From Chlorokybus atmophyticus (taxonomy: Eukaryota; Plantae; Mesostigma and Chlorokybus algae): a DNA stretch of 64,000 nt. The stretch lies in the NCBI GenBank assembly GCA_009103225.1, contig RHPI01003753.1:1-64000 (forward strand). The letters run 5' to 3'. Below, in pieces: positions 1,750-49,847 of this stretch; positions within the stretch are counted from its first letter, which is position 1, and every line of letters starts with the position of its first letter. A program made the translations under genes and the position numbers. The notes beneath the pieces were generated by a model, which was not told where the DNA came from, searched no databases, and saw only the letters and a list, made by a program, of their open reading frames with translations.

Positions 1750-2110
1750 GTACGGCCGCGTCCTATAGTTTGGCCGCGTGCTGGGCAAGCAACGAACAGT
1801 CGCCGCCAAAGCGGAGAAGACCCCTATATATGGCCGCGGATTGAGGCATGTCGCGGTCGGCGCAGAGCGGAGACCCATCATTATAACCGCGTGCCGGGCC
1901 AGCAACGAACGGTCGCCGCCGAAGCGGAAAGACTCCTCAAGAGGAGACCCCTTATACGGCCGCGGATCGGGGGATGTCGCGCAGCCGCCGCAGAGCGGAA
2001 AGACCCATCAATACGACCGCGTGCCGGGCGAGCAACGCGGAAGTTTGTACCCAACCGCGGGCAAGCCAAAAACTTGCTGTGCGGCAGGGGCCGGGATTTG
2101 GACCCCCGAC
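1750..2110. repeat. GC-rich degenerate ~115-130-bp repeat block (CCGCGTGCYGGGC..AGCAACG..GTCGCCGCC..AGCGGA..AGACCC)
   Basis: The motif string recurs at ~1774, ~1886 and ~2017 with substitutions and indels. Confidence 0.65.
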
Positions 2111-2169
2111 CTCCCTTACCGGCTAAGTGATTACACGTCGCGTAACCATTACGCCATTCAGCCGAAAGG

Positions 2170-2655
2170 TTAGAGGCCAGGTTCTTGCATAACACGATGC
2201 TGGACCATTATGAGGAACCCTTCCTTTTCTTTTATAAAGTGATCGAACAAGTACACCGTGATAATTATGTTCAGAATGCGATTACCAAGGTACTCTAGAG
2301 TCTCATTACAGTCCCACGATATGTCGTACTCCTTGAGGGCGCTCCTGTACGTGAGAGCCTAGTGGCACTGGTCAAGATTCTTGATCTTGACCGAACGCGC
2401 CGTCTCAACTCGCAAGCGAGAGGGAAGCTCCGGCGTGCACTTTGGTGCCTGGGCCTCGCTAACACTGGGGGGAGGGCTGGGAGTCTTGCGGGCCACCTGG
2501 CGAAGATTGGGTTTGACTGGAGGCTGCTGGCTGATAAGTGCTGGCTGATAAACGTATGCGGGTGGGGGCCCTGGCGGTAGGGGCGGCTGAAACTTGGGAG
2601 GTTGCGATTGTATCGGTGGCATGAAATTGCAATGCGCTTGCGAGTGATGGAGCAT
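2170..2655 (-). pseudogene. RNase III N-terminal fragment, giant-virus (Nucleocytoviricota)-like, copy 1
   Basis: Reading through the TAG at 2361-2359 gives RVETARSVKIKNLDQCH*ALTYRSALKEYDISWDCNETLEYLGNRILNIIITVYLFDHFIKEKEGFLIMVQHRV. This matches the RNase III pattern (ALTH.S, E.LEFLGD, YLF..F....EG.L). The signature D reads as N and the second half of the domain is missing. Confidence 0.85.
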
Positions 2656-3233
2656 GCTGTGAGTGAAATGCGATAACTATATTTTGCTGCGACGCGCGTC
2701 TTTTTTACGTTGACTGTCCGATCAAATTACGTTTCTAATATCCAAGCATGCCATGCCTGTTGGAAGCAAACACAGCGGGGACCAACGCAATCAATAATGT
2801 AACTTATAGTGCAAAACCTAGCATTCCGCCGGGCGGCTAAGGGTGCCAGTATGAGCGAAGGGGGCAAGAATGTGCTAAAGTACTCGATTCTGGGGATTCG
2901 CGGATTGAGGCATGTCGCGGTCGGCGCAGAGCGGAGACCCATCATTATAACCGCGTGCCGGGCCAGCAACGAACGGTCGCCGCCGAAGCGGAAAGACTCC
3001 TCAAGAGGAGACCCCTTATACGGCCGCGGATCGGGGGATGTCGCGCAGCCGCCGCAGAGCGGAAAGACCCATCAATACGACCGCGTGCCGGGCGAGCAAC
3101 GCGGAAGTTTGTACCCAACCGCGGGCAAGCCAAAAACTTGCTGTGCGGCAGGGGCCGGGATTTGGACCCCCGACCTCCCTTACCGGCTAAGTGATTACAC
3201 GTCGCGTAACCATTACGCCATTCAGCCGAAAGG

Positions 3234-3719
3234 TTAGAGGCCAGGTTCTTGCATAACACGATGCTGGACCATTATGAGGAACCCTTCCTTTTCTTTTATA
3301 AAGTGATCGAACAAGTACACCGTGATAATTATGTTCAGAATGCGATTACCAAGGTACTCTAGAGTCTCATTACAGTCCCACGATATGTCGTACTCCTTGA
3401 GGGCGCTCCTGTACGTGAGAGCCTAGTGGCACTGGTCAAGATTCTTGATCTTGACCGAACGCGCCGTCTCAACTCGCAAGCGAGAGGGAAGCTCCGGCGT
3501 GCACTTTGGTGCCTGGGCCTCGCTAACACTGGGGGGAGGGCTGGGAGTCTTGCGGGCCACCTGGCGAAGATTGGGTTTGACTGGAGGCTGCTGGCTGATA
3601 AGTGCTGGCTGATAAACGTATGCGGGTGGGGGCCCTGGCGGTAGGGGCGGCTGAAACTTGGGAGGTTGCGATTGTATCGGTGGCATGAAATTGCAATGCG
3701 CTTGCGAGTGATGGAGCAT
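3234..3719 (-). pseudogene. RNase III N-terminal fragment, copy 2
   Basis: Same sequence as copy 1, offset +1064. Confidence 0.85.
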
Positions 3720-4297
3720 GCTGTGAGTGAAATGCGATAACTATATTTTGCTGCGACGCGCGTCTTTTTTACGTTGACTGTCCGATCAAATTACGTTTCT
3801 AATATCCAAGCATGCCATGCCTGTTGGAAGCAAACACAGCGGGGACCAACGCAATCAATAATGTAACTTATAGTGCAAAACCTAGCATTCCGCCGGGCGG
3901 CTAAGGGTGCCAGTATGAGCGAAGGGGGCAAGAATGTGCTAAAGTACTCGATTCTGGGGATTCGCGGATTGAGGCATGTCGCGGTCGGCGCAGAGCGGAG
4001 ACCCATCATTATAACCGCGTGCCGGGCCAGCAACGAACGGTCGCCGCCGAAGCGGAAAGACTCCTCAAGAGGAGACCCCTTATACGGCCGCGGATCGGGG
4101 GATGTCGCGCAGCCGCCGCAGAGCGGAAAGACCCATCAATACGACCGCGTGCCGGGCGAGCAACGCGGAAGTTTGTACCCAACCGCGGGCAAGCCAAAAA
4201 CTTGCTGTGCGGCAGGGGCCGGGATTTGGACCCCCGACCTCCCTTACCGGCTAAGTGATTACACGTCGCGTAACCATTACGCCATTCAGCCGAAAGG

Positions 4298-4783
4298 TTA
4301 GAGGCCAGGTTCTTGCATAACACGATGCTGGACCATTATGAGGAACCCTTCCTTTTCTTTTATAAAGTGATCGAACAAGTACACCGTGATAATTATGTTC
4401 AGAATGCGATTACCAAGGTACTCTAGAGTCTCATTACAGTCCCACGATATGTCGTACTCCTTGAGGGCGCTCCTGTACGTGAGAGCCTAGTGGCACTGGT
4501 CAAGATTCTTGATCTTGACCGAACGCGCCGTCTCAACTCGCAAGCGAGAGGGAAGCTCCGGCGTGCACTTTGGTGCCTGGGCCTCGCTAACACTGGGGGG
4601 AGGGCTGGGAGTCTTGCGGGCCACCTGGCGAAGATTGGGTTTGACTGGAGGCTGCTGGCTGATAAGTGCTGGCTGATAAACGTATGCGGGTGGGGGCCCT
4701 GGCGGTAGGGGCGGCTGAAACTTGGGAGGTTGCGATTGTATCGGTGGCATGAAATTGCAATGCGCTTGCGAGTGATGGAGCAT
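4298..4783 (-). pseudogene. RNase III N-terminal fragment, copy 3
   Basis: Same sequence as copy 1, offset +2128. Confidence 0.85.
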
Positions 4784-5344
4784 GCTGTGAGTGAAATGCG
4801 ATAACTATATTTTGCTGCGACGCGCGTCTTTTTTACGTTGACTGTCCGATCAAATTACGTTTCTAATATCCAAGCATGCCATGCCTGTTGGAAGCAAACA
4901 CAGCGGGGACCAACGCAATCAATAATGTAACTTATAGTGCAAAACCTAGCATTCCGCCGGGCGGCTAAGGGTGCCAGTATGAGCGAAGGGGGCAAGAATG
5001 TGCTAAAGTACTCGATTCTTGGACTGGTGGCATTGGCACTGCTATATTTTGTCGGATATCTGTTGTATAGGGTCTTTACAAACTTGACTTCTACTGTGGC
5101 GGCCACTGAAACCGTCATTGTGCCCATCTGCAACAGCTTGAGCAACACCCAGACCAACCTTAACATCAACGTCGGCAACAGCTGGTCACTTGACCACTCC
5201 ACAGAGTATAACGCCACTCCCCATTATCAGCACCCTGGGTGGCACCAACGGCGTACAAAGTACCAAGCCGCACCCTGGGTGGTACAAGTAGCGTGCCGGT
5301 TATAACAAGCAGCACCCTGGGTGGCACCAGCAGCGTGCCAGGTA

Positions 5345-5517
5345 CAGTCTACCCCCGCCAAGAGAATTCGTTTCAAGAGAATAACCCCGTTAGTATCATA
5401 AAAAATGAGATTACCAAACGTCCCCGTCCGGGGATTACCAAACGTTCAAGAGAATAACCCCGCCAAGAGCATAAGATGGCTGTGGATAAACAGTATGCTC
5501 TTAGCGAGGGTAGACTG
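5345..5517. mobile_element. 173-bp MITE, Tc1/mariner-pogo type, TA target-site duplication
   Basis: Left TA|CAGTCTACCCCCGCCAAGAG, right CTCTTAGCGAGGGTAGACTG|TA (18/20 inverted match). Removing it restores the host repeat SVPGNTSSTLGG in frame. Confidence 0.9.
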
Positions 5518-6036
5518 TAACACAAGCAGTACCCTGGGTGGTACAAGTGGTACTCTGAGTGGCACGAGCAACGCGCCGAGTACCACAAGCAGCATGCCAA
5601 GTACCACAAGCAATGCCACTCGACACGGTGCCGAGTACCGTGAGTGCCAGCGCCAGCCCCTGTCCCAGTTCCAGCCCCAGACGAAGCAAAGCTTCCATCG
5701 CAATGAGCGAAACGGACCTGCGTATTGGCAATGCACACTGATGGCGGTGACCGATGAGAGGTTCATTAAAAAGTGCAGGGCGTGGACAAATAAAACCTGT
5801 GGCCGGCCCCCACGGATAAGGCTGTTTCCAACGCGAGCGGTTGCCATCTGCTTATGCAGAATGATGGCAACCTGGTGCTATATGACAGCTCGGGTGTGCG
5901 CTGGTTTTTCAACACCATCAGGAGGGGGGCAGGCGCGCCTTACACACCGGCCATGCAGTAGGACAACAACCTTGTGGTGTATGACAACGCGGTATGGCGC
6001 CTATATGGGATCACTGCGCATCTTAAAGTAGGGGAG

Positions 6037-6568
6037 TGTAACGGGAAGGTACATTAAATTACCACAAATCGACCATAAAAGCACCAAGTCTTTTGTGGTC
6101 GAGTGGGCTGTGACATTGGTCATCGGAGCTTGAGACCCGAGTTCGATTCCTGCCTTGCACACGAATGCCGCAGTCGTTGTTTCTCGATCCAAGAATCGTA
6201 AATGGTCGCTTTATAAGTGCCATCATCGATGGGTCGCGACTTGCCTAATGGCAGTCGCACCGAACTGACCGGTTCAGTCGGCGCGGCAGGGCGCGACCTG
6301 CCTATCGCGGCAACGCGACCTGTGGGGCCGGCAGCGGCGCGATGTGCGCGCGTTGACCGGTATGGGCCTAAATTGGCCGGTCCTTGGGTGGTGGGGCCGG
6401 TAACCGACCCTAATTCAGACCCCTGGGATTAATTCCCCAGCTGATGGGTGCCAGCTGCCGAGGACGTCAGCGTTCTTAAGTGGGGGGAATGTAACGGGAA
6501 GGTACATTAAATTACCACAAATCGACCATAAAAGCACCAAGTCTTTTGTGGTCGAGTAGGCTGTGACA
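6037..6568 (+). mobile_element. TRIM (terminal-repeat retrotransposon in miniature): 79-bp LTRs, 374-bp non-coding interior, 5-bp TSD GGGAG
   Basis: LTRs TGTAACGG...GCTGTGACA at 6037-6115 and 6490-6568 differ at one base. PBS-like TGGTCATCGGAGC at 6117; PPT AAGTGGGGGGAA at 6478-6489; GGGAG at 6032-6036 and 6569-6573. Confidence 0.9.
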
Positions 6569-7700
6569 GGGAGACTGAGCTCGATCGCCATGCGGTTAGG
6601 GTTCGCCGTGGGGTCCGACATCCTCTAGAGGCAACAAGTACCTGTCTGTGAATGGCGCCGGCGCTCATAAAAATTACCGACGATGGGAGCGTGATTATGC
6701 ACGTGCCGCGTGACGCCCCTTGGGACAGTGGCGCCTACCTGGCACTGCAATACGATGGGAACAGACGATGGGAACATTGTCTTATATGGCAGCAAGTTGC
6801 AGGGTGAGATGCGCTGGCAGAGCAACAGCTACTTCAGTGTGGATCAGAGGCCCTACACGCTATCGCTTACTCCTGAGGAGACCAGATTTACAGGAGCAAG
6901 AGTGGGCAGGTGGTCTGGCGAGGACCGTTAACTGTAGCGCGACGGACAACGGCCTGTAGATCAGCGTGTACAGTACCGTACCGGTGTGGATGTTCAAGAG
7001 TGGCTCACTGAGCTGGACCGGTGTGGACGCAAACCCCTGGAAGTTTTCCACCGGGGGCGTAAACATCGTGGCCTACGTGCTGACGGTGGCAAAGAGCACG
7101 GGGGGCCAATCCGCGTGCTTGTCGGCCTACGATGTCAGCCCCACGTCCAGTGTGCTGCGTCCCCACCCATCGTACAGATGGAGCACTGACGTCAGCAAGG
7201 CGCTGTCTGTGTGGGCAAAGAAGGCAGCAGCAGCGTGTACGTGTGTAGGTCTGTGGCCGGAAAAATGACGCGGGGAGGGTCGCCATAGGAGGTGCAAAGA
7301 ATGGGGTGTGCTACTATCGTGGCAAGGACGGCCATGCGGTGTCTGCCATCCGCAACTTCCAGTACCTTACTCAAGAAGGAGACGCATCATCGGCGGCCCT
7401 GCGTACTGACATAATCCCCAGCTTGAATGATAAGAGCGACTGATTCAGCGGCATCAACGCGGCGTTTAGCGACACGGGGAAGGTGGACTCGGACGGCCAG
7501 CGCAGGTTGTGCGCGGGACACGTGTTCAGAGCATTCGCAAAGAATGGTAACAATGACGGGCTGCCCATTATTGTGCTCCTTGGCCAGACTTTCAAAAAGA
7601 ACAACAAGTTAGACTGCTCGGCGGGGATTGGGGAAAAGAATTTTAACGACAGCGATGCTTTGGAATACGACCTGATGGACGATGGCCTGCAGTACTCTTG

Positions 7701-8654
7701 CAAAACATCCGTGCATTGATCGAGAAGCATCGGCCCCCGATCGGCTTCGAACACTAACTTTGATTGCGATACATGTTCGACTACGTAGCGGGCATCGCGT
7801 CGAATGTGGGGGCCTCGTGCTCGAAAGGCGTGAGGACCTTTGCTGTAATTCCTTAAAAGAAGCCCGAGGCGATCTTTATTACGATAAATACGCCGACCAT
7901 CGAGGACTTTATTCGAACGGCCGACGAGTTCACGACCGAAGAAATCGAGCGGATGGGGGGAGGCAGGGTGTTGTGGCACCAGTACTTTAATATGAGGCGC
8001 GTTAGAGTCTACAACGACGCCATGCGCCCGGACGCACGTGCATACTAGGGCACAATTATCACCAACAAGGTGTCTGTCTGTGTGAGGCGTGCCACTTTGC
8101 TGCCTCGATCTATGTTCGACACACCCGTGCCGAGACGAAAATGCCCTAAGAGAAACAGTACCCAAGCTGACAACAGTGCAAAGGCCATCGAGATATGACC
8201 TCATACAAGGGTGGTGGGCATAGACCCGGGACGCAGGAGAATCTTCACTGTGGCCGTGCACTCTAAAGCGAGCAAAAGAGAACTGCATTCAAACAGTGAA
8301 ATGAGGTACGAGATGTCCTCGTGGTCTACAGGCAAATTATCGACGTCAGAGTTCACCTCCAAGCTCTACTGCGCCTGTTTCCATGAGATGAGAGGCCACG
8401 TGCTCCTTAACGGTTGTAGCGAGCTCTACGGTGTGCAGCTGTGTTCCAACACAGTGTGCAATCGCACGTTGTGGGGCCGCGACGTCAACGCCGCCATTTA
8501 GATTCTGAACAGGTTGCTGAGGGGCGCGAAGGGACGACGAAAACCCCCTCAGTTTCTCAGGGCCGATACGAACAATCCTCGATTCGGGCAAAAAAATGTT
8601 TCGAGGCCTCAGAGAGGGGCTGTACGCTGTGGAGGATGTTCCATAGGAACGTAA
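7701..8654 (+). pseudogene. Fanzor1 (TnpB-like RNA-guided RuvC endonuclease) remnant, 5'-truncated and internally deleted
   Basis: One frame with six stops (7755, 7761, 7854, 8046, 8196, 8499). Motifs in order: RTFAVIP*KKPEAIFITINT, LWHQYFN, GTIITNKVSV, RuvC-I VVGIDPG (D at 8223), RuvC-II SEFTSKLYCAC (E at 8349), zinc finger CSNTVC, RuvC-III W.RDVNAA (D at 8481), KPPQFLR. Confidence 0.88.
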
Positions 8655-8697
8655 CACGTGTGTATTCAAAGTACAAATGACCAAGAATCCCTCGCTT

Positions 8698-8812
8698 ACT
8701 GACACTGTGCCGCCGGTAACTGCGATGGTTGCACAGTTTCTACACTGCTCAAAACAGGTCAGATAAGTTTACAGCTGCCTACCGTTTAGCTTAGTATCTT
8801 AACACTGTCAGT
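8698..8812 (+). ncRNA. Candidate Fanzor omegaRNA scaffold / element right end
   Basis: Lies just downstream of the Fanzor ORF. ACTGACA (8698-8704) can pair with TGTCAGT (8806-8812); ACTGTGC (8704-8710) can pair with GCACAGT (8731-8737). Followed by TTAA. Pairings are visible; function is inferred from position only. Confidence 0.35.
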
Positions 8813-9668: not shown

Positions 9669-12600
9669 ATGAGGGGTGGCAGGTAAGGCAGACGAGAGAG
9701 AGGGGTTGAGAGTGACATGGTGCTCGCAAATTGTGATGGCGCCTGTTGTCCACCCAGCCGCAATTGACCTTGCACGCATGATGCTTGCTCATGTCAAGCT
9801 CCCTCGCCTTTCTGCTGGCATCACTGCATTTGTGGCCGCAGTGCGTGCATCAGATGGTTTTGCTGCATGGCTGAATGCCTGATGGCATCGATATTGCAGA
9901 TGCAGGCCATCTTGGCCGTTGCTTCTGGTGGCATCGTTGCTGGTGTGCAGCTGCACGACAGCAGGGAGACTTGTAGCCGCACAAGCTTTGGAGCCTCCCT
10001 CACCCGCAGATGCACCATCCCTTCCCCCACCGGACAACGCTCCACCTACCATCCCAGCAGGTGTACATGTCATGCTTGATACAAACTACCATGTTCATGG
10101 TCAGCTTACTATGCGTCGCCTTCTTGCATCGAATGAACCATGTTGTTGTGGTTGTGTTGTTGTTGTTCATGTTCATTCTGCTCGTAGACAAGTTATATAT
10201 GTCACTTGTGTGCACACCCTGCCATCCATGGTGAAGCGCTAACACGCATGGCTGGTACCAGAGTCTCCGCCTCCAGTAGCGCCCTCACCTTCCAACCCCA
10301 ACAACGTAGCGCCACCACCACCGTTCCCTTCCGTGTCCGATGTTCCACCACCCCCTCAGGACGCCGCATCTCCACCTGTTGCACCGCCTGTGCCCGATGT
10401 TCCACCACCCCCTCAGGACGCCGCATCTCCACCTGTTGCACCGCCTGTGCCCGATGTTCCACCACCCCCTCAGGACGCCGCATCTCCACCTGTTGCACCG
10501 CCTGTGCCCGATGTTCCACCACCCCCTCAGGACGCCGCATCTCCACCTGTCCCACCGCCTGCTCCCGACTATCCTGGAGAGCCGTTCCCACCACCGTATG
10601 CTCCACCCTTCATAGACCCGACACCGGGCGCACCCGCACCGTATCCAGACACGCCCGCACCCACGAGTGTACCGCCTAATGCCGGCCCACCATTAGCACC
10701 AGGTACAGCCATCAACCAAGATGGGTGTTATTGTGTTGACGTCATTGTCAAACATTGCTTGTAACAACCACATCAGCACGGTGAGAAGTTTGCTCAGCAT
10801 GGCATGTATTAATTTAATGCTATGCAGCACCATCAGCATCGGTTCCGCCATCTCCGCCTTCCGTTGACGCACCCCCACCGCCACCGGTACGTAGATGAAG
10901 GATTTTGTATCAGGAGTCTGTATGTGCATGTAACGCACGATGTCCTCACACAAGTCTAACCAGCATTGTGCGCCCTCAGCCACCCCCGCCAACTGCTAAC
11001 GTCACAGCTCCGGCTCCGGTGGCGAGGGATGTTGTGCCGGGCACAGGTGCAGAAGCGATCCGCATCCATGGCGACAGCATCTCGTTCTCCATCAATTTGC
11101 CGGTTCGCGGGATCTGCAACATCAGCAGCTTTGAGAGCAATCCGGTGGTCGCCATTGAGTCGTCCACAGCCACTGCCGAGGCAGATGGCGCATCGTCGTA
11201 CACTTTGCAGGTCAGTTGTGCGTTGTGGTTGGCATGAAACTTGTAGACTCAGACGAAGACGTGCAATGAGCGTTGTGCGTTGCAGGTGACTCTGCCGTCT
11301 GGAGAAGATGTTGTGGGCATTCAGGTGCCTGTAGGTGCTTGTGTAACAGCGGATGGCACCCAAAGCATTGACGTAGGTCCGATTGTTATCATTAGAGGTA
11401 TATCACCGATCCTTACAGACGTTCATGTGCAAACGCTGCATGCATGCGCAGATGTAATGTTGCAGCTGTTGTTGGCTGATCGCAGATACGCAGCAGCCGG
11501 TTCCCGTCATTTCTACAACCGCTCTTCTGCAGCTGCAGGACACGTCTGTTGGAATGGTCATCAAGTTCAATGAGCCATTGACACAAGACCTGGTGATAGA
11601 GAACATGAACGTAACCGGATCTACCATGTACGTGCCCCACTGCGTCAATCATATTGCTAGGAGAAGCATAGTCGCTCATCACGCATGCGCAACGTGCTCT
11701 GCAGCTCGAAGAAGTTAAGCCGCGTTGACAATGTCACCTATGCGTTGCTTGTTGAGTTGCCGCAAGGCCAAGCACAAGTCCTGTATGCGAGTGTCCCTGA
11801 GGGCGTTGTCACCGACTTGAGTGGATGGCCCAATGTTGCCTCGAATGTGATCACCATCAAGCACGGTGAGAGCAACGCTCGGTCTCAGTCATATCAGCGT
11901 TGAGCTTGATGTTGCTGCTGTTGATGCGCAGAGCCCAACATCACCGCGGCAGCAGCAACCGCGGGTGAGATCTCGTCCAACGGTGTCATCGCCACGGCGG
12001 CAGGCGCCGCGGCCACGAGCATCGCGGTCGGCGTAGCGGTGCCCGCAGCAACCGCTGCCGCCACCGCTGGTGCGACGGCTACCGCAACTGCCACAAGCGG
12101 TGTGGCTGCCAGCGCGGCCGGAGGGGCTGCGCATGGAACCACGTCTACAGGCGCCAACGCACTCCTGGTAACATAGTGCAAGGCAGATGTACAGCTGATG
12201 TATATATGTATGAGCATAGACTGTGCACTGCTTAAGTGTGTATACAATCCTCGTTGATTGCTCAACCAGCTTGTTCGTCTCGCGCAGTACTTGACCTTCC
12301 ACGTCCAGACGTTTGCGGCCATGCACGACATCGCCGCACCGCTGCCGCCGAGGTTTCGCGCCTTTACGCAGAACCTCAGGTGGACCAACTTTCAGGTGGG
12401 CGGTGGCCTGTGGGCTATTGGCGCTGATACAGGTCACTTCGGCAACAACGACAACACGGCAGACAACAACACGACGACCACACGGCGCAGGAGGAGCCGC
12501 CGCTTGCTGGAGCTGACCAATTCCACTACTATGCTGCAACCTGCCGATCAGACCCTCCAGGACATCATGAGCACTGTCCAGGCCAGCTTGTCGCCCAATG

Positions 12601-14561
12601 GTGAGGCCGTCGACGAAAGACTGTATCAGCTCTTTGGCAAAGCGCAACAGCAGGGGTGAGGAACAGTGCAACGCACAAGTACTAGAGTGCTCAAGAGCTT
12701 GATGTTTGCTGCTAACACTACAATCTGCTTTCTCATCGTGCGCAGATGGAAACAGTACGCAGAGGTTGCAACGGCGTTTGTTGTCTTCATAGCGGCAGTA
12801 TTGGTCTTGCACGGTGCCATCTATTTCATCATCAAGCGCGTCTTTGAAAAGAATGTGCCCTTCATCCTTCAGTTTCCGCGGATAGAGATATTCGTGTTGA
12901 CCATCAGCTTGCTGGGCGTCTCGCACGCATCCTCGTCTCTCGTTACAGGTTTGTATCGCCGTTGCTGGCGGTTGATAAAACTATGCACAATCTGACTTCA
13001 TCTGGTGCTGCAGCTCGCACAGCTGGCAACGTGATTGTTGGGCTCTGCACACTCATCATCTTCCCGCTTGCGTTTGCACTCTTCTCCACACACTGGGTGT
13101 ACAAAAATGTTCTGAAGGTACCTCGTTGATTGTTGCAGTTGATGCATATAGAATCACGCACACTTTACACCTTGGGGTGCGCATCTGCGGATACTGATAG
13201 AATTGCGCTTATCGTCATCTGCTTTCATTTGTAGCGGCCTATCGTGCGCTTTGTGGTCGAAAAGAAGGTCAGCGAGCCGCGAGGCTGCGGGCTGTGCAGC
13301 AAGCCGCAAGGCAAATGGGAAACAATCAGAGCAAACGTGGAAAGCAGTAGCACGGCGTCGTCCACGTCGGGACAAGTGAAAAACAGCACGGATCAGTGGG
13401 GATTGTACTTTGAGGTAAGGCATGCTTGAGCATTATGTGCAGCTGTACGACATATTGACAGTCGCTGGCAAGCAACCCTGATTGTAATACACAGGACTTT
13501 AGAGGGCCCGAGACCCGTTCCAGCACACCTGCATTGTCTTCTGGTGAGAAAGAGCTGTTAGTGACGCAGCCGGAGCAAGACCATGCTAGCCGATGCGCTG
13601 CCATGCGCGTGTTTTACCTCGTGCTGACTATCTGGCTGCGGGTACGTTCAACACGCATGTTGAAGGGAAGAATTGCAACAAATGCCGTCGTGTCCTCAGT
13701 CAAACTAAGCAGTTGCTTCTGCTGTTGTTGTTGATGCGTGCACTGGCAGGTCGTAATCGGGACAGTTGTTGGAGGGTACAGTCGCCACAAGTTGGTCAAG
13801 AACAATGTTGAGGTACATATGATGCTGTGCCAGCGGCAGTGTGCACGAATCTGGCAAGTTGTATGCGTGCCTAGAATGGTGCGCAATGCGCTGTCAAGGC
13901 GACGACTTGCATTCAAGTTGAGCCAAGTTAGCATGCACATCGAAGCTTACTCAAAACTCTTCGGCAGGTGGGCCTGCTGGCAGCCGTGAGTGTGTTTCAA
14001 GCCCTCTTTGTCGTCTGTTTGCGGGTGAGTGTATGGCTGGACTACTGTTTAAGCTGAATGCTGGCTACTTGCAAACCAGTGTTTGCCTGCAGCCGTTTGT
14101 GGACCATGTCATGGAAGTGTGCGAACTCGTGTCCGTGCTGTGCGAGCTGGGCGCCTACGTCTGCATCTTCCTCGTTGCGTACGCGGACTCGCTTGCGCTC
14201 GATGTTGATCGCCTGGATCGCTGCTTGGTGGTGATGGCTATGTCCGGCATCATATCCCAGCTGCTCAACCAGTATGTCAGTCATCTTGGCTTGCTTGCTT
14301 AGCGGTATAACTTGTGATCACACGGCAATGTCACCTTGTCTGCCCAGATACTGGAGTCTGTACAAGACGGGGCGAGGGGCAGCGGGGTTGGTATGGCACA
14401 AAATCAAAAGCTATCTAGCTGGCCAGCACGCTTCTAAGCCGGAGGTGTTGGCGGAGAAAGACGACGACATTCCAACTGACAACCCGCGGGATGTGATCCA
14501 CATCAGCTTGTCCTGCCCGTCAGACGGCATTGCTACCGAGAGCGCATCGCACAACAAGTAG
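9669..14561 (+). CDS. Multi-exon secreted-type membrane protein: signal peptide, Pro-rich stalk, C-terminal multi-TM bundle resembling TRP_C/PF06011-type proteins
   Basis: Exon 1 ATG AGG GGT GGC AG|gtaagg spliced to 9900 gives MRGGRCRPSWPLLLVASLLVCSC. Pro-rich exon at 10333-10700; QTFAAMHDIAAPLPPRFRAFTQNLRWTNF at ~12300; several hydrophobic exons 12700-14270; last exon QYWSLYK...SHNK*. Confidence 0.75.
10333..10560 (+). repeat. Coding tandem repeat, 4 x 57 bp (VPDVPPPPQDAASPPVAPP)
   Basis: Near-exact 57-nt periodicity. Confidence 0.95.
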
Positions 14562-14870
14562 ACAGACCGAGTGGCCTGAGGACCTTTACAGTGGTCACGT
14601 TTACGAGCACATACTATAGTTTGTAAAGTGGAGACAAGACAAGACGGGCCGAGGGGCAGCGGGGTTGGTATGGCACAAAATCAAAAGCTATCTAGCTGGC
14701 CAGCACGCTTCTAAGCCGGAGGTGTTGGCGGAGAAAGACGACGACATTCCAACTGACAACCCGCGGGATGTGATGCACATCAGCTTGTCCAGCCCGTCAG
14801 ACGGCATTGCTACCGAGAGCGCATCGCACAACAAGTAGACAGACCGAGGGGCCTGAGGACCTTTCCAGTG
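14362..14870 (+). repeat. Direct duplication (~230 bp, period 277) of the last coding exon and stop codon of the upstream gene
   Basis: 14362-14593 is nearly identical to 14639-14870. Confidence 0.92.
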
Positions 14871-15164
14871 CTCACGCATTTCGTGACACAAGTTTTATAT
14901 GCTATGAAGTTGCATGCCTGTTGTGCAAGGTTGGGTATTTATTAAGCTGCCTGGGTGGGAGCTGTCGAAGTTTGGCAATACTTACAGCTCTAGTCATCTT
15001 GAATTTACCAAGTCTTGTACCCACACCTTGTTACTCAGATACAAAGATCTGTGCCAGACTTAATGGAATGTACACATGATGCAACCATTGCGAATAATCT
15101 TCTTTCAGTCAAGATGATAGTCAGAACATCTGTGTCACTATATAGACATCTGTACACACTTGAA

Positions 15165-16725: not shown

Positions 16726-17455
16726 GAGATTACATGAGTGTCATTACACTATCAGTTGATAATAGTTACTATAAGTGATCCTTATTGTCTCCTTGACAAG
16801 GATGGGTCATGTACATTAAGCATGTATACCCCTTGTGGGTGACGAGATTACTTGAGTGTCATTACACTGTTAGCTGATAATATTGTTACTATAGGTGATC
16901 CTTATTGTCTCCTTGACTAGGATGGGGTCATGTTTACTAAGCATATGTAGACATTGTGGGTGAGGAGATTACATGAGTGTCACTAAACTATTAGTTAATA
17001 GTATTGTTACTATAAGTGAACCTTATTGTCTCCTTGACAATGATGGGTCATGTACATTAAGCATGTATACCCCTTGTAGGTGAGGAGATTACTTGAGTGT
17101 CATTACACTATCAATTGATACTCTTGTTATTACAAGTGCTCCTTATTGTCTCCTTGACAAGGATGTGTCATGTACACTAAGCATGTATACCCCTTGTGGG
17201 TGAGTAGATTACTTGAGTGTCATTAAACTAGCAATGAATAATATTGTTACTATAAGTGATCTTGATTGTCTCCTTAACAAGGATGTGTCATGTACACTAA
17301 GCATGTATAGACATTATAGGTGAGAAGATTACTCGAGTGTCATCATACTATCAATTAATAATCTTGTTACTATCAGTGATCTTTATTGTCTCCTTGACCA
17401 GGATGGGTCATGTACACTAAGCATATAAACTACTTGTGGGTGAGGAGATTACTTG
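16726..17455. repeat. AT-rich minisatellite/satellite, ~6 diverged copies of a ~120-bp unit
   Basis: (G/A/T)AGATTAC(A/T)TGAGTG recurs at 16726, 16844, 16965, 17085, 17205, 17325 and 17445. Confidence 0.93.
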
Positions 17456-17646
17456 ACTAAGGATAAGTAGCTGACAAATTAGGAAAAATACTTAGTGTCT
17501 CCGTAATAAGGATGTGTCAATTACCACATGCATGTACACACCTAATTTATGAGGTGACTAAGGGAGTGTCGCGGGGGTGCAATGATGCCCAGTGGTGGTG
17601 GAGATTGCTGCAGTTTCAGTCTGAAGCAATGAAGTTACACAAGCAT

Positions 17647-23109: not shown

Positions 23110-23550
23110 ACACATCAGCCTCGGACATTGTGAACACATCTTGGGCTGATCACACATCAGCCTCCGACATTGAGAACGTCCTTGGCTGGTCACATCAGCC
23201 TAGGACATCACACACACCGTCCTTGGTTGGTCACATCAGCCTAGGACATAACACTCATGCATACATATGCATACTTATGCGCGCACATGCACACATATGC
23301 GCATGTATGCATACACATGTATACATCTAGTACTTACATCATATGCACGCATATGCACTCATATGCGTACACATGCACATGCATGCAAACATATGCACAC
23401 ACATGCGGACATGTGCATACACATGCACATATACCGACATATAGCTCATGTGCACTCACATGGCCATGTCTCATGGGTACCGACCACTGTATACTGGCAA
23501 GCACTCACATGGCCATGTCTCATGGGTACCGACCACTGTATACTGGCAAG
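23110..23550. repeat. Short tandem repeats: 4 x ~38-42 bp (CACATCAGCCT.GGACAT) and 2 x 50 bp
   Basis: Units at ~23110-23250; duplication GCACTCACATGGCCATGTCTCATGGGTACCGACCACTGTATACTGGCAA at ~23452-23551. Confidence 0.8.
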
Positions 23551-26535
23551 CACACTTTGTGCTTGCTAGTATACAGTACCTTGTGTAGTTCATCTCACTC
23601 TGGGCCTCATAGGCTCAAGAGCAGACCACGTGAGAGCCACCCCACAAGCACTACACATGCTTATGACATGGAAAACGCACTTAGTCTCATCTTACTTAAA
23701 ACATAAGTAAGGAACAGAGAATGACTTAAGCCAGCCTTATAGGCGTGACAGTGGGTGGGTGGGTGGGTGTCCAATTGATGGTCCTTTCTGTTGCGCGCGT
23801 TGGCAGCGTGGCACCCGCCGTCGATACAAAACCCCCCGGAAGAATGAACATCACCGTCACCGTCACCGTCAGCCAGTTTGGCGTCCAAGCGTCGCTGTTG
23901 AAAGAAATCACAGTGATCGACTTGGCGTGAGAGCCATGGCCATACGCTCGTTGCTAGTGCATATCATGTTGCTGTGTATCGCGCACGACTCCGTGTCTCA
24001 CACATGTGTGTCGTGCGTGTGTACACATGTGCGTGCGTGTGCAGCTTAGGAGGGCCATACCTCACTCCCATGCATAACGTGCGCTTTTGTGTTCCCGTCA
24101 CCTTCAACTCGTGCGGGAGACAACACGCCATTGCGTGGGACCTTAACAATGATCACACCTTTAACGATGCCTATGGCGACACACCCCATGGCTTGAAGCC
24201 AGCAGATTGGCCCTGCCTCCTTGCGTGTATCGGATACACGTGCGAGTCAGCAGCCGATCCGCCTGTCCCGTCTCGCCAACCAAACTGTACAGCTTCAACC
24301 TCACAATCTTAAAGCCAAACAGGCCCACAACATATGGCATAGTTGTGCTCCCGGCGAGTGGCAGTAATGTTGCTAGTGTGGGAGAGGAGATTAAAGTGTC
24401 CGTGGGGAAACGCGTGGCAACCTGTCTGCCTTACAACATCACCGTCAACTGTGGCGCAGACAATATGGTGGGGGGGATGCTAAGGCTTCATCTTTGCAGC
24501 ACGTATGGCCAAGAAGTCCTGCTGTGTGTGTGACCTTGTGCTCTTGTTTGTGCGTGCGTGTGTGCAGGGTATCAACCCAGGGTACTGTCGGTACAATACT
24601 CCTGGCGTGAAAGTCATCACGGTCAACATGACGCAGTACGGTGTTTCAACCTCCCGCTATCGCAAAGTCGCCATTGCTGCCTATGTGTGAGTGTGCATGT
24701 TGTCGTCGTTGTCATGGTGGTTGTTATTGTTGTTGTTGACTTACCCCCATGCCGCGTGCAGCATCGGAGGCCGGTACAACGTGCCCCTGTGTGGCAGCAC
24801 CGGTGTTGGAGCTGTGGGTGGATTCGATGAGTGCGGCACTCCCTACATCCTCGCGTGGGACTTTGACAACGACGTGTATGACGACGGGGCCAACATCTGT
24901 CTTCAACGCAGCCATATTGCAGCTCCCTCCAGCGGTGCATCCCATACGCGTGCGAGCCAGCAGCGACACCTGCCCCAACTCTAACCCCATCATCCTCACC
25001 ACCAACATGACCGTCTACTACTACTTCGACACGCTGCCGCCCCCGAGGTTCAACGTCGTGCAAGCTGTTCCAGGAAGTTACAACACTACAAACTCCCCCC
25101 CCTGATGTAGTTATCTATGATACCAACATCTGTGTCGATAAAGTCATGAGTTGCGTCTATAACCACATCCAAGGGATAGGGCATGTATAAAATATCCACA
25201 AACATGTTGATAATGTAGATGTAATTATGGACGTGTGACCGAACACAGCTTGATGTTGGACCCTATGACCCATGCAACATTATAGATGTAAATCCGGGTT
25301 GCTGAATTTACATTGGTTTTATCAATAAGATCATAGGTATTTTATGGATGCCTCTCACACCACGAGACAGGCAGCCCGTATTCACATCTACTTTATAGAC
25401 ATAAAAATAGGCTGCCGATATCAACATTGATATTGTCTCTATGGAACCAACATCTTACGACCTCATCACCATCAGAACCGCAACCGCAAGGCTTGGAGTT
25501 GCGTAGCTGTAGTTTTGTGCTGTATACTAGCCCTTGTGGATAGATCTAATAGAACCGGATTCTGGATTGTATACGCATGTCCAATCGCATCCTATATATC
25601 ACTATATACCGCTGCATTACCCATGCATATGTTGATAATGTCAATTACTTTCACTATATAATAATAATGCAAAATTGCATGCTGGCTACTATGCCCATAT
25701 AAATCTTGATAATGTCGCAAACAATATCTACAATACCCATCCGCATGCGAGGAAGAATGACTGTATATCACCGTGAGCAGAATATACAATATAGATGTAC
25801 AAAGCATTATGGTAGACACTTATAGCTATATTGTAGGCGACACTTTCGGACATGTGTCATGATTTTATCAAGATTTACGTGGAAAACATTCTGGATATTG
25901 TATATGTTAATATCAATTTTGTAGCATTGTTGATGGATTAGTTTTCACGGGTAAACTTCTGTGGCGGCTCCGCAAAATAGATACTAACCTTGATATAAAC
26001 CGTATGCATATGAATTTTGCAGTCATCTACAATCCTAGGGGCAGTTTGTAGTGCAATGGGGTAGCTGCTGTTGGAGAGGACTTTACGATTCGCGTTTTGG
26101 ATGAGAAAATCAAGTGCCTCCCTTTCAACCTTACCATCGACTGCGGGCCAGACCATGTGGTGAGTACATGTTGGAATGTGTTCATCTGTGCCACCGTATC
26201 TATCTGCTTGCAGATTGGTTGATTAGTGTTTGTGACAGGGTAACAAGATAGGCCTTTGCCAGTATGCCACTAGCGGGGACAAGCGCATCATAGTAACACT
26301 CTCGCAGAGCGGCTTTGTTGTGTCGAGCAGCATCAGCGTAACTGTGGTCAACACCAAGCCGGCATGCATAACGCAAGCGTCTGATTGCGTTGTGTACACA
26401 CGCTGCGCGTGCATGTACACAACAACTCTGTCAACATGTGTGGCACAGGGCGGCGTTCCCTTAGGGAAGAGTGCTCGGGAAGGGGGGCTGTACCGTGTCT
26501 GACTTGGGGAGACTTCTAGCGTGTAAATCCCCCCC

Positions 26536-30593: not shown

Positions 30594-33500
30594 ATGGTGA
30601 AGGCCTACCTGCGTTACGAGGCCGGGGAGGCGTGGGGGGTGCTGGCGTCCCCCTCCGCGCCCCTCACGTACGACCCCACCGGCAAGCTGCTCGTCACGGG
30701 CGGACTGGAGAACGCACTGGTCTGGAACGTCAAGCTAGCCACAGTGGTGAGTGAATGAGAGTGAATGTGAAGCTGACAGCTGTCTCAGAAACACCTGATT
30801 TGTAAGAGTTGGCGTTGATGGTGTGGTGTGCATGCAGATCCGCACCCTGACGCCGTTGACGGCGGGTGCTTCCTCGGCGACAGGCGCACCGGTGGCGGAG
30901 GTGACGGCCATGACGCATGCGCCTGCGGGCACGCAGGTCGCCATAGGCTACTCGGATGGAACGGTGAGGAGCATGCACTTTTCATGGTTGCATGCATGTC
31001 TTGTTATCACAGATTGCGCCAAATTGTGAACCTTTGCCTGTGCTTGCAGCTGTGTGTGTGTATTGACTGACTCATTGCCTCACACAGGTTAGGGTATGGG
31101 ACACAGTGAAGGGCTCGTGTGATGTTGTGCTGACCGGCCACAAGAAAGCCGTCACCGCGCTGAGGTGCATTTCTCTTCTGCATTGCACACAAGCAGCATG
31201 AATTATACAAACGCAATCAACACAACAACAACACTACGTCAGGTACAATGCGAGTGGTGCTATCCTTGCCTCTGGCGGCTCCGACACGCGTGTCGTGTTG
31301 TGGGACGTTGCGGGCGAGCAGGGCCTCGCGCGCCTGCAGGGACACAAGGACCAAATCACCGACCTGGCGTTCCTGCACAGCGACGAGGATAGAAGCAACT
31401 CCACGCGCCTCATCTCATCGTCTAAAGACTCGCAGCTCAAGGTGTAACTGGTGTTGGTTATTTCATGCTCACTAACCCGTGTTGTGTATTTTGCCCGTCC
31501 AGCAGTATGTTTGCCAACCAAATATGCTGTACTGCGTGCACGGGTGGGTGGGTAGGTCATAGGATAGTTGTGCATGTGCATGTCCGTGCGGGTTCGTGTG
31601 TGTGTGTATGTGTATGACTTTCATGATCTGTCTGTGTTATTGTCATTCTTGGCTCTTGGAGGCTGCGTACAGAGGCATGCAGCGTTGCAGGTCTGGGACT
31701 TAAATACGTACCACTGCATCCAAACGGTAGTTGGACATCGCGGCGAGGTGTGGTCTCTCGATGTCGATCCCGCCGAGCGCCGAGTGCTAACTGGATCAGT
31801 TGACCCAGATTTGCGCGCCTTCTCCATCGATCGCGACAGCGAGGGCGAAGCCAACGTGGATGAAAACAACCTCCTTCAGCCTTTTGGAGAAATCAGACGC
31901 CAGAACACCACTGATAGAGTCTCAGCCGTGCGTTACTCGCGTGACGGGAGTTATGTTGGGTGTCAAGCGGCGGGAAAGACGCTCGAGTTGTATCGAGTTC
32001 GGTCCAAAGATGAGATTCTGCGCAAGGCTAAACGGCGTAAGCGTAGAAAGCGCGAGAAGGGCAAGAAGGGGGGTGAGGGAGATGAGGTGGACAAGGAGGA
32101 GGACGATGAGCCGGGAGTGTCTGCTGCAGATGAACTGGAGCTTCTCACGGTCATCAGGTGTGATAGTGGGTTTGATTGATATGTGAGAATGGCCGCAGAT
32201 TTTGTGCGACACGATTGATGTTAATAACACATAAGCACTCATTCGCTTGCTGGGGCATGAGCGCCGATGATGTTCATATCAGGACCAAGACCAAAGTGAG
32301 GTCGTTCTCCTTCTGTCCCTCCCCGAGTCGTAAAGGCGCGGTGTTGGAGGTGGCGCTCGCGCTGCACAACAACTCGCTGGAGGTGTGGGCGGTCAGGAGC
32401 GGCGCCAAGGAGGCGGAGAAAGTTCAGACGTTGGATCAACAGGGCCACCGCACCGACGTACGTGCCGTCGTCCTTAGCAGCGATGACAGCTTGCTTGTGT
32501 CCCTCAGCCACTCAGCTGTGAAGGTAGTATATCAGTTCATTGTGCAGCAGTGGCTCATTTGTCCCTCTGAAGTTCAAGTCGTTATGCTTACAACCATTGG
32601 TCTTGCTCAGGTGTGGAACCCTCAAACAACAGCTTGCTTGAGGTCAATGGACTCTGGTTACGGGTTGTGCGGGACATTTGTGCCCGGCGACAAGCACGTT
32701 GTTGTAGGAACACGTGAGGGTTCGCTTGAAGTGTACGACGTGGGTGCGGGCGAGCAGCTGGCGAAGCTCCCCGCTCATTCGGGTGCGGTGTGGGGTATCG
32801 CTCCGTTACCAGACGGGAGCGGGTTGATATCCGGCAGCGCCGATAAGGACGTCAAGTTCTGGGAGTACGAGTTGTTACACGACGAGGCCACGCGAGTAAA
32901 GAGACTCGGTCTGCGTCATGTGAGGACGTTGACCATGTCTGAAGACGTGCTGAGCGTGCGCGTGAGTCCGGATGGGAAGCTCATGGCCGTGGCGCTGTTG
33001 GACGCCACGATCAAGGTGTTTTTCACGGACTCGCTCAAGTTCTTCCTGTCGCTGTATGGACACAAGCTGCCAGTGCTTTGCATGGACATCTCGTCCGATG
33101 GCCAGCTATTAGCCACAGGCTCGGCTGACAAGAACGTCAAGATATGGGGACTGGACTTTGGGGACTGCCACAAGAGCCTCTTCGCGCACAACGATAGCGT
33201 CATGCAGGCAAGAGTCATGTTGCCATTGTATGTGACGTTGCAAGTTGATGGCATGCTGCTCATTAATTATCGTGTATTGTGTTGTTTAGTATCTTGTATC
33301 TTGTATTGTGCCATTGGTAGCATATCTGCATCAAATATTTCAATTTCAGCGCTGCTTCGCTCGAACATTGTTTGAGCGCACCGCAAGTGTCAGAGCGTGT
33401 GCTTATGTTGGTGCAATGCAGGTGAAATTCGTGCGCAACACGCACTACATGTTCACGGTCGGCAAGGACAAGATGGTCAAGTACTGGGACGCCGACAAGT

Positions 33501-42346: not shown

Positions 42347-44459
42347 ATGGCTTTCAAGCGTGGATATCAGCTGGTACTGGGTGGAGGACGAGAGGATATC
42401 ATACACTGCTACCAACTACCATGCCAAACCTGGTCAATGGGCTTCGGTCCCAATGGAGCCACTCAGAACCGTCTGATGGGCCGTTTGCCAGTGATCTTTT
42501 TCACGGAAGTACCCGTCGTTTGACTCTCATCACGTGACAGGGGCTAACCAACTGGACTCTGTGGCTGCCACGTGGCACCAACTTGTTATCCGTGATGGCG
42601 GTGGCGGCGGCGGGCGAGCGCCACGTAGCAGCGCTGCCGTCGACGGTCAGCCACCGCCCCAACAACCTCGCCCACGGCGGCGGCCGTCTCGCCTATGTCG
42701 CCGGCGGCACAGACAGCTGCGTCAGGACCGTTGATGAACACCAGGCAGCCGCCGCACAACCTGTGAGCTGTAGCATGCATTCTCATACATGCACGCAGCT
42801 GTGTTCTTAAACCAGCCAAGAAACCTGAATATGAATCTCCATGCTGGCAGATGACATCGAGTTCTTATGGGCGCATCCCAACAAGCAACGTGTCGCAAGC
42901 AAAGATGTGCCCCATAACAGACGGAGATAACACAAATACTTTTGTCATCGCCCTCACAACCGCAACCGATATCCAGGTGAGGTCAGATCCAAGTTATACA
43001 TCAAAATATCATACATGCATTATCTGTGCATTGTTGGAGTAACTCGAGGTTCGTTGTATTTTTAAATGCTCTAGATTTGGGATGCAAGTGGAGCGCGAAT
43101 GTTGTTCACGCATGCGTTGCGGGCAGCAATGAGCAGCAATGGATTGATGAGGGGGATATCAGCAGTGCGATCGGGGGACAACAGAACCCACGTTTGTTTT
43201 GGGGATGCAAGCGGGAGCATTCACATCGTCAGCTGCGAAGTAAGTGAGTCTGTTGACCGCACTGGGTGTGCACACGCATGCAGGCGCGTGCACATCGGGG
43301 TGTACGTGCAGCAATCATATGTGCATGCGCGTACGCGCGTGTGCATGTGAGCGAGCGCGCGCACGGGCATGAGTACATGCGTACACACTTGTGGGTATGC
43401 CTTTGGGACATACATTTCATTGATGCCACAGAAAGGCAACAAGTTCAAGTACGCAGCGTCTTTACAAGCCCACACGGCGCCCGTATCAGACGTGTCGTCC
43501 CAGTATCAGTGCTCAGAGGGGGCTGATATCGGCCACGAGCACAACTTCTTCGCCAGCACAGATACAGAGGTGAGGCCGATTGCGCTACGCACTCAAAAAT
43601 GCACAACAAACAACGCAGTAACAAACGACTAGTGGCAATCCCGCAGGGTAATGTGGTCACTTGGGAGGCCATCAAGGCGCAGGAGTTTCAGCAGCGAGAT
43701 CGCGCGGACGGCAGCGGCGAGCCCGTGGTTGCGTTGGGCGTGTGCGCGGCGGCCAGTACGTTGCTGGCTTTGGAGTGGATGGGCAAGCTCAGGGTGTACG
43801 GCATGGTGCGTTTGCATAGCAAATGTTCCGATGCTTTGTATCATTGCACACATGCACGCACATAATCACGAGCGCTCACACATGTGCACACACACATGCA
43901 ACCGGAGCATATGCTCCCTCTGCTTGTATGACTTTGTGTGTGACTGTGTTGAGCCAAGTTGCGACCTCGAGTGTGACTGTAAAGTAAAGCAGGGTGCAGG
44001 TGTGCTGGTGCTGAGGGCAGAGGTAGTCGCCCACGCGCGCTTCGCCACGTGCCTTGCTGTCCACCCTTCCAAAGATATTTTTGCCACGGGCGGGGAGGAC
44101 GGCTGCGTCACTGCATGGACCCTCACCAAGGACGCATCGCAACCCGTGAGTGCTGTTGCTACCCGTGTCACGAGGTTTGCTTGCAGCATGTTGTCTGTAC
44201 CCGCAACATGCTACTCTACTCATTCATATGCATACACGCGCATGCAAGTGCGCACTTACGCGCATGCACACATCAGCGCTCCCCTGCGTGCGCTTGTACT
44301 CACACGCAAGCGTATATGCAGGTGGGTGTGGTGTTGTCTGTGGTGTGGACGGATGCGATGGTGGTGGGGCTGGCATTCTGCGGGGACAAGTGCGGCAAGT
44401 TATCGGCCGCCGCGTATGACCGGGATCAGCTCACGGTGTGGTCACTACCCACCAGTTAA
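42347..44459 (+). CDS. WDR54: WD40-repeat protein, WDR54-like
   Basis: MAFKRGYQL start; LPSTVSHRPNNL; CFGDASGSIH; AEVVAHARFATCLAVHPSKDIFATGGEDG; MVVGLAF...AAAYDRDQLTVW. Confidence 0.65.
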
Positions 44460-49600: not shown

Positions 49601-49847
49601 ACCACCAACAGCAACACAGCCCGCACCCGCGCCATGTGTGGCAACCAAAGGCCAGATAGTTGCTGTGACATGCACAGGGAATGATACGCTGTCACCCTCA
49701 CCTGGAGTGGTGGTTCATTATAACATCACGCCCTCGCTTGCTCCTGCACCAGCGCCCAATGGTGGTTGGCGATCAACAACAGCACGACCAAGCTGGCATT
49801 TGCTTGTTTTGCTCTCGTTTGTCACTTTGTTTCTGTATGCACTGTAG
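46675..49847 (+). CDS. Secreted glycoside hydrolase family 79-like (beta-glucuronidase/heparanase fold) with Ser/Pro linker and hydrophobic C-tail
   Basis: Signal peptide; FVGYAME; PVLRMGG; acid/base-type MANEF; HPY; nucleophile-type FLEHG..NCHGVPGISDTFG; VQPVYY; VVINK; VTWGGQGF; GPI/TM-like tail. Confidence 0.85.

Follow-up and report, generated by a model that had tools for sequence, protein, structure and literature searches.

Fanzor1 proteins are TnpB-derived nucleases that use a single RuvC active site (Asp, Glu, Asp) to cut guide-matching DNA beside a short motif; their guide is an omega-RNA from the 3′ end of the mobile element that encodes them, and they are carried by transposons and giant viruses. 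Here we describe a locus of this family in a 64-kb stretch of DNA from the alga Chlorokybus atmophyticus (assembly GCA_009103225.1, contig RHPI01003753.1, positions 1 to 64,000 of the forward strand), which we refer to as a whole as the window. We conclude with high confidence that the segment from 7776, or possibly 7745, to 8567 (+) is a Fanzor1 pseudogene in which the C-terminal 60% of the gene survives in decayed form. It lies in a subtelomeric position, 7.7 kb from the chromosome end.

The closest described systems are three Fanzor1 proteins of solved structure, SpuFz1 from Spizellomyces punctatus (8GKH), GtFz1 from Guillardia theta (9CER) and PpFz1 from Parasitella parasitica (9CF0). In SpuFz1 the metal-binding catalytic residues are D383, E541 and D606 (PMC10432273; D606 also PMC11423790), the Glu being located on the loop that joins strand 5 and the TNB domain, and the RuvC lid is required for activity (PMC11423790). 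The Fanzor1 RuvC-II Glu is ‘rearranged’ and stands six residues before the CxxC, an Asp follows 4–8 residues past the second Cys pair, and the Asp–Glu spacing of ~120–160 residues holds the RuvC core and the lid (PMC10711439). Partial Fanzor1 copies and ‘ghost’ elements devoid of an open reading frame (ORF) are reported to be common in S. punctatus (PMC10432273). Prokaryotic TnpB (ISDra2; 8H1J) and Cas12f belong to the same superfamily, with a RuvC domain that is interrupted by the TNB zinc ribbon, and the relatives of our locus likewise carry this ribbon as PF07282.

Homology of the remnant to Fanzor1

The frame starting at 7701 (+) can be read through six stops (TAA at 7755, TGA at 7761, TAA at 7854, TAG at 8046, TGA at 8196 and TAG at 8499) to a final TAA at 8652. 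Along this frame, within 7701–8654, lie VVGIDPGRRRIFT, STSEFTSKL followed by Cys residues, two Cys pairs, LCSNTVCNRTLWGRDVNAAI and WGRDVNAAI, and the sequence is in this respect as an earlier sequence-only reading had described it. That reading had also stated that all three RuvC acidic residues are kept, and they are: the RuvC-I Asp (codon GAC, 8223–8225, +, in GIDPG), the RuvC-II Glu (codon GAG, 8349–8351, +, in SEFTSK) and the RuvC-III Asp (codon GAC, 8481–8483, +, in RDVNAA). The first Asp and the Glu, at residues 9 and 51 of the piece 8199–8498, stand 42 residues apart, the Glu is followed by x5-Y-C-A-C, and the RuvC-III Asp stands 7 residues past the second Cys pair.

A HMMER scan of 1.84e9 proteins with the 100-codon piece 8199–8498 returned 15 matches at E ≤ 1e-3 (best 5.4e-15). 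All ten relatives scanned (378–851 residues) carry PF07282 (Cas12f1-like/TnpB TNB) at the C-terminus, seven of them above the Pfam cut-off of 26.3 bits, as were five of seven further relatives. Their motifs run in the same order as in the window, namely I.IDPG.K.IFT, then ~170 residues, then DEFRTSKLCC.C and C.N..C.RT.WNRDVNAAINIL. From 18 relatives we built an alignment and profile of 637 positions (A1), in which the DPG Asp, the Gly of AYGDAS, the Glu before the zinc ribbon and the first Cys pair are invariant and the RuvC-III Asp is nearly so. When compared with all PDB sequences, A1 matched GtFz1 (2.8e-31, profile positions 17–620), SpuFz1 (1.4e-27) and PpFz1 (8e-27) and nothing else, with no Fanzor2, TnpB or Cas12 chain at E ≤ 1. 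The three acidic columns of A1 coincide in this alignment with the SpuFz1 motifs DP, DEYKTS and WNRD, and D383, E541 and D606 correspond to the RuvC-I DPG, the Glu ahead of the zinc ribbon and the RuvC-III WNRD (PMC10432273). The earlier assignment of EFTSK to RuvC-II was right for this lineage: the catalytic E541 of SpuFz1 has its counterpart in the invariant E614 of the family, which also fits the ‘rearranged’ Glu (PMC10432273, PMC10711439).

We scanned the 2643 six-frame segments of the window with A1. The piece 8199–8498 matched at E 6.9e-31 (profile positions 379–427 and 559–612), two weaker matches were collinear with it at 7857–8045 (E 0.005, positions 272–322) and 8502–8651 (E 0.39, positions 614–635), and there was no other. 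A read-through translation, made by a local script with X at each stop, aligned to positions 243–427 and 559–635 of the 637, and tblastn with the relatives recovered the same two collinear blocks in a single frame. Block 1 (7776–8342, +; profile positions 243–427) comprises the pre-RuvC part and RuvC strands 1–3 and scored 89.1 bits (E 1.5e-29, with X at stops); by tblastn, the relatives P0001, P0002, P0003 and P0005 matched 7824–8336 within it (E 1e-10 to 7e-8). Block 2 (8343–8567, +; profile positions 559–635) comprises the RuvC-II Glu, the TNB zinc ribbon, the RuvC-III helix and a C-terminal P..F.R, scored 85.9 bits (E 1.4e-28), and is 58% identical over 52 residues to P0003, P0016 and P0006. 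The three acidic codons align to D438 and E614, both invariant in A1, and to D660, which is at least 90% conserved.

The extent of 7701–8654 given by the sequence-only reading holds for the part from ~7776 (possibly 7745) to 8567 and not for its edges, as 7701–7745 and 8568–8654 are backed by no alignment with the profile or by tblastn. A possible N-terminal edge at 7745–7775 (+) holds two stops and can be compared by eye with P0001–P0005 (FEH-stop-L-stop-LRYMFDYV against the family Y-I/L-P-W/F-L-R-K-M-L). It falls within the envelope of the hidden Markov model (HMM), is not confidently aligned, and taken alone its score is not significant. Past the last homologous residue, an open tail (8568–8654, +) has no homology and ends with the TAA at 8652.

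An AlphaFold model of P0002 (pLDDT 75, pTM 0.73) was then compared with known structures by Foldseek. The top seven matches were Fanzor1 structures (E 3e-21 to 3e-18; template modelling (TM) scores 0.56–0.73), and the next came after twelve orders of magnitude: Cas12f at 1e-6, Fanzor2 at 1.1e-4 (TM 0.24/0.34) and TnpB at 1.4e-3. The relatives resemble TnpB and Cas12f at the superfamily level only (fold E 1e-3 to 1e-6, TM 0.2–0.38, no profile match). They align with the solved Fanzor1 proteins over nearly their whole length and share the same fold at 14–18% identity, with a second Cys pair of the form Cx4C in the remnant’s family and not CxxC as in the solved proteins. Together, the homology of the relatives, the profile, the fold match and the six stops bear out the earlier identification of a dead Fanzor1-type remnant.

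The direct relatives (P0001–P0006, P0016, P0040 and the IMG/VR GVMAG loci L004–L036) come from giant viruses and uncultured eukaryotes and are 38–58% identical to the remnant over the retained blocks, with the same order of motifs. They are intact ORFs of 520–850 residues or fragments at contig ends, and none has the 131-position deletion described below. Identity of the remnant to anything in public protein sets is at most ~58%, and in collection scans no 8-residue word was common to these relatives and the window piece. Scans of viral and metagenome contigs with this piece gave pattern matches and no true close relative. Word-index protein searches with P0002 and A1 added merely a handful of relatives; the same search with the piece 8199–8498 was blank, in an index that covers only proteins of 55–175 residues, so this result says little.

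Several observations weigh against reading the locus as a Fanzor1 pseudogene. Pfam and NCBIfam, run on five stop-free pieces of the window, gave no TnpB/Fanzor match (Pfam even at E ≤ 10), and phmmer of the piece 8199–8498 against PDB sequences found nothing. Because the window pieces lack a direct match, the Fanzor1 assignment is transitive, by way of relatives that are 38–58% identical. Six nonsense codons stand in a frame that has no frameshift over ~800 bp, which is somewhat odd for long neutral decay. Finally, because ends, a target-site duplication, a transposase and an omega-RNA were not found, we infer the mobile-element origin only. As for the first of these points, the relatives themselves score just 14–35 bits on PF07282 against its cut-off of 26.3 bits, and a damaged copy is therefore expected to fall under such filters. 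The sequence-only reading had named the lack of a TnpB/Fanzor HMM hit as what would speak against it; this is literally what the Pfam and NCBIfam scans of the pieces returned, and it was overturned by the family profile and the HMMER scan. Damaged members that are easy to detect with a profile of their own family can escape a general Pfam model.

Damage to the coding sequence

Unlike the solved Fanzor1 proteins, the window copy is without the 242 N-terminal profile positions and without the RuvC core from strand 3 to the Glu, including the lid, and it bears six stops and a mutated zinc ligand. At the N-terminus, where the WED and REC domains of a Fanzor1 protein hold its guide RNA, profile positions 1–242 are gone and only positions 243–378 of the pre-RuvC part are present. 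The missing positions gave only negative scores upstream (all plus frames, 5000–7800) and are absent elsewhere in the window too. A frame-shifted continuation into 7650–7716, plausible by eye, is not claimed, as all of these upstream scores are negative.

The second loss is an internal deletion in frame, with its junction at 8340–8345 (+), between codons 8340–8342 and 8343–8345. It removed 131 profile positions (428–558, corresponding to P0002 residues 480–610): the matches to positions 379–427 and 559–612 abut in the window, and the same blocks lie ~125–150 residues apart in every relative. A profile scan did not find the missing positions elsewhere in the window in any frame. The Asp–Glu spacing is 158 residues in SpuFz1, 176 in P0002 and 42 in the remnant. 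The 42-codon gap that had been noticed from the sequence is thus a real in-frame deletion, and this spacing marks a broken copy and not a separate family.

What was deleted differs from what had been proposed. The sequence-only reading had named a bridge-helix/REC2 segment; bridge helix and REC2 are Cas12 features, and on the P0002 model the deleted residues 480–610 belong to the RuvC core. They cover the helices after RuvC strand 3 (476–566), strand 4 (574–580, AYGDAS), a low-confidence loop (582–593), a helix (596–605) and strand 5 (608–613). By its position and its alignment to SpuFz1 residues ~506–522, this modelled loop is the RuvC lid. Because the core of the RuvC fold between the acidic residues is deleted, the retained triad is without functional meaning; retained catalytic residues say nothing once the fold between them is gone.

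Smaller lesions accompany the two large losses. The remnant is short of one further codon, the R of EFRTS, and where the zinc ribbon CxxC should begin it has Tyr instead of Cys (codon TAC, 8367–8369, +; TSKLYCAC in the window vs TSKlCcaC in the profile), at a position that is C621 in P0002 and invariant in A1. The zinc finger of the earlier reading is not intact, having lost one ligand. The premature stops, all on the plus strand, are TAA 7755–7757 and TGA 7761–7763, within or against the motif with the W/F preceding LRK; TAA 7854–7856, at the conserved Gln of the family LLPQK; TAG 8046–8048, in the conserved block directly before I.TDGVSV; TGA 8196–8198, in a variable linker upstream of RuvC-I; and TAG 8499–8501, at the nearly invariant Asn of NAAINI. 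Several of the stops replace residues of conserved, aligned columns, namely Gln in LLPQK and Asn in NAAINI, and the stops are therefore nonsense mutations and not intron sequence. A variant genetic code was ruled out, since the standard code leaves conserved host exons open, among them the WDR3 exon of 399 codons.

We also compared the base composition of the remnant with that of the window. CpG observed/expected was 1.11 in the remnant vs 0.83 in the window, and so not depleted; TpA/ApT was 0.82 vs 0.74 ± 0.16; and (CpA+TpG)/(ApC+GpT) was 1.01 vs 1.32 ± 0.16, ~2 standard deviations under the window mean. These dinucleotide indices show no clear pattern in the remnant of the kind left by repeat-induced point mutation (RIP-like) or by deamination. 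The locus encodes no functional protein, nothing points to present activity, and it is a subtelomeric fossil.

Origin and alternative explanations

A transposon or a fragment of giant-virus DNA probably introduced the ancestral copy, which has since lost its N-terminal REC/WED part, 131 RuvC codons in frame, one zinc ligand and, to six nonsense mutations, its open frame. No second copy was found in the window by tblastn, blastn or the A1 profile. At the locus itself there were no convincing terminal repeats or target-site duplication, and the only bracketing inverted pair (15 nt, 87%, at 6175 and 7718) is likely due to chance. Pfam detected no transposase domain in the flanking frames on either strand, with only a weak B_lectin hint (E 0.055). 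In an intact element, the guide-RNA gene is expected within or just past the stretch equivalent to 8568–8654. Folding of 8500–8800 gave a z of −0.99 vs shuffles, a test with little power for a single decayed copy, and a four-locus alignment (the window and the 3′ flanks of three relatives) had 0 conserved pairs, again at low power with a decayed copy; Rfam had no match in the window. The Spu-1 partial genes and ‘ghost’ elements of S. punctatus are likewise decayed Fanzor1 copies in a eukaryotic genome (PMC10432273). Spu-1 copies are many and are marked by 30-nt inverted repeats, whereas here there is one copy in 64 kb and its ends were not found.

One possible, if doubtful, origin is a giant-virus fragment that integrated here with the Fanzor1 gene and of which all else has decayed or been lost; the remnant would then not derive from an autonomous cellular transposon. 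Giant-virus bins are rich in this family (IMG/VR has 33 loci coding for relatives, 18 on GVMAG-labelled contigs), and Fz1 has been found in giant viruses, which were proposed as vectors (PMC10432273). Viral delivery is plausible because the closest relatives, P0003/P0016 and P0040 (51–58% identity in the C-terminal block), lie in contigs of dense, intronless, giant-virus-like genes, whose GC content of 0.57–0.58 is near that of the window; in addition, a 1064-bp subtelomeric repeat close to the remnant has a stretch that resembles a GVMAG RNase III. However, no viral hallmark gene and no gene shared with those contigs adjoins the remnant, and the GVMAG copies are too distant for a direct match to the window piece. 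A giant-virus source would in any case bear on origin only and would leave the present nature of the sequence unchanged.

The closest intact relatives are held by two contigs, L001 (ENA ERZ25067524, 395 kb) and L037 (GCA_013572995.1, JACCDX010363334.1). Their neighbouring genes include Glyco_transf_25, GT_PLOD, ankyrin, ATG8, eIF-1a and MscL, at a GC content of 0.57–0.58. Both contigs are probably giant-virus genomes with a window-like base composition.

That the stretch is a live Fanzor gene, with its stops in introns and its missing segment spliced in from elsewhere, is very improbable. It could draw on the intron-rich, eukaryotic character of the window, in which just 22 ORFs of at least 180 residues were found in 64 kb, and on a frame that is held over 800 bp without a frameshift. 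Yet four of the six stops (7755, 7761, 7854 and 8499) stand within or against conserved motifs, 8046 lies just before I.TDGVSV, and only 8196 is in a variable linker. Moreover, no frame elsewhere in the window supplies the missing 131 positions, the upstream sequence gives only negative scores for the 242 N-terminal positions of the profile, and an invariant zinc ligand is mutated.

We give hardly any credence to a prokaryotic TnpB (IS200/IS605 or IS607) from contamination or recent bacterial transfer, or to a Fanzor2 such as ApmFz2 (9B0L). Both are of the same superfamily, and the relatives share the PF07282 zinc ribbon with them; the profile, however, matches neither at E ≤ 1, yet it matches three Fanzor1 proteins at nearly full length, and the fold search placed Fanzor1 at 3e-21 to 3e-18 vs 1e-4 for Fanzor2 and 1e-3 for TnpB. 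The remnant also lies between a telomere and eukaryotic exons, at a GC content like that of its flanks.

It is just as hard to sustain that the true feature is a 305-codon ATG ORF at 7371–8288 (−), with the Fanzor-like frame incidental: only four stop-free stretches of the window are longer, but this ORF has no Pfam family, no PDB match and no recorded gene with this product, it encodes much Ser, Arg and Leu, the plus frame reaches E 1e-31, and, because intact GC-rich homologues show like stretches antisense to their Fanzor genes (231 and 166 open codons), the ORF is a by-product of codon composition.

Genomic surroundings and implications

The window opens at a chromosome end, with (ACCCTA)n at 1–90 (14.8 copies) forming a TTAGGG-type telomere. 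Its GC content is ~0.53 and its long ORFs are scattered. One host gene is represented by an exon of WDR3, encoding the second beta-propeller (32176–33372, +; E 4e-98). Other host exons lie at 43651–44475 (+), 55835–56641 (+), 49128–49844 (+) and 60926–62116 (−), among them two WD40 ORFs, a GH79 C-terminal domain and a calcineurin-like phosphoesterase.

Between the telomere and the Fanzor1 remnant, 1835–5300 is occupied by the 1064-bp subtelomeric tandem repeat, with copies in register at 1835, 2899 and 3963; over the 300 nt that were compared, three copies or more are 100% identical. Each copy, read on the minus strand (2161–2304, 3225–3368 and 4289–4432), resembles part of the RNase III domain of L036:535-1443 (35% over 48 residues, E 1e-5), an ORF of a giant-virus bin in which Pfam finds Ribonuclease_3 at 7e-23. 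A 95-nt direct repeat at 6021–6115 and 6474–6568 is 94% identical, with its copies 453 bp apart. Short open stretches at 5794–5958 and 6652–6928 (+), in different frames, encode bulb-lectin-like sequence (MQNDGNLVLY and DDGNIVLYG...WQSN; B_lectin E 0.055) and may belong to a further gene, decayed or split, that lies directly upstream of the remnant.

Downstream of the remnant, a 57-bp tandem repeat at 10333–10568 (4.1 copies, 97% matches) lies in an open frame whose translation is a Pro-rich repeat (PPVPDVPPPPQDAASPPVA). Further tandem arrays were found at 14362–14876, 16726–17456 and 23177–23553, consisting of a 277-bp unit (1.9 copies), an AT-rich 120-bp satellite (6.1 copies) and several short CA/GCATG-rich arrays.

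The Fanzor1 remnant is an ordinary pseudogene of a known family, in which partial copies are ordinary. Alone it is of little importance, as Fanzor1 genes and partial copies are known from many eukaryotes and giant viruses. Its value is that of a marker: a fairly divergent Fanzor1 lineage once entered this genome, which is a reason for an assembly-wide profile search for intact copies. We consider it unlikely that this lineage was delivered by a giant virus and still has intact, active copies elsewhere in the genome, with the remnant as its only visible trace in the window. In that case the intact copies would count as new programmable nucleases and the locus as the mark of a transfer from virus to host.

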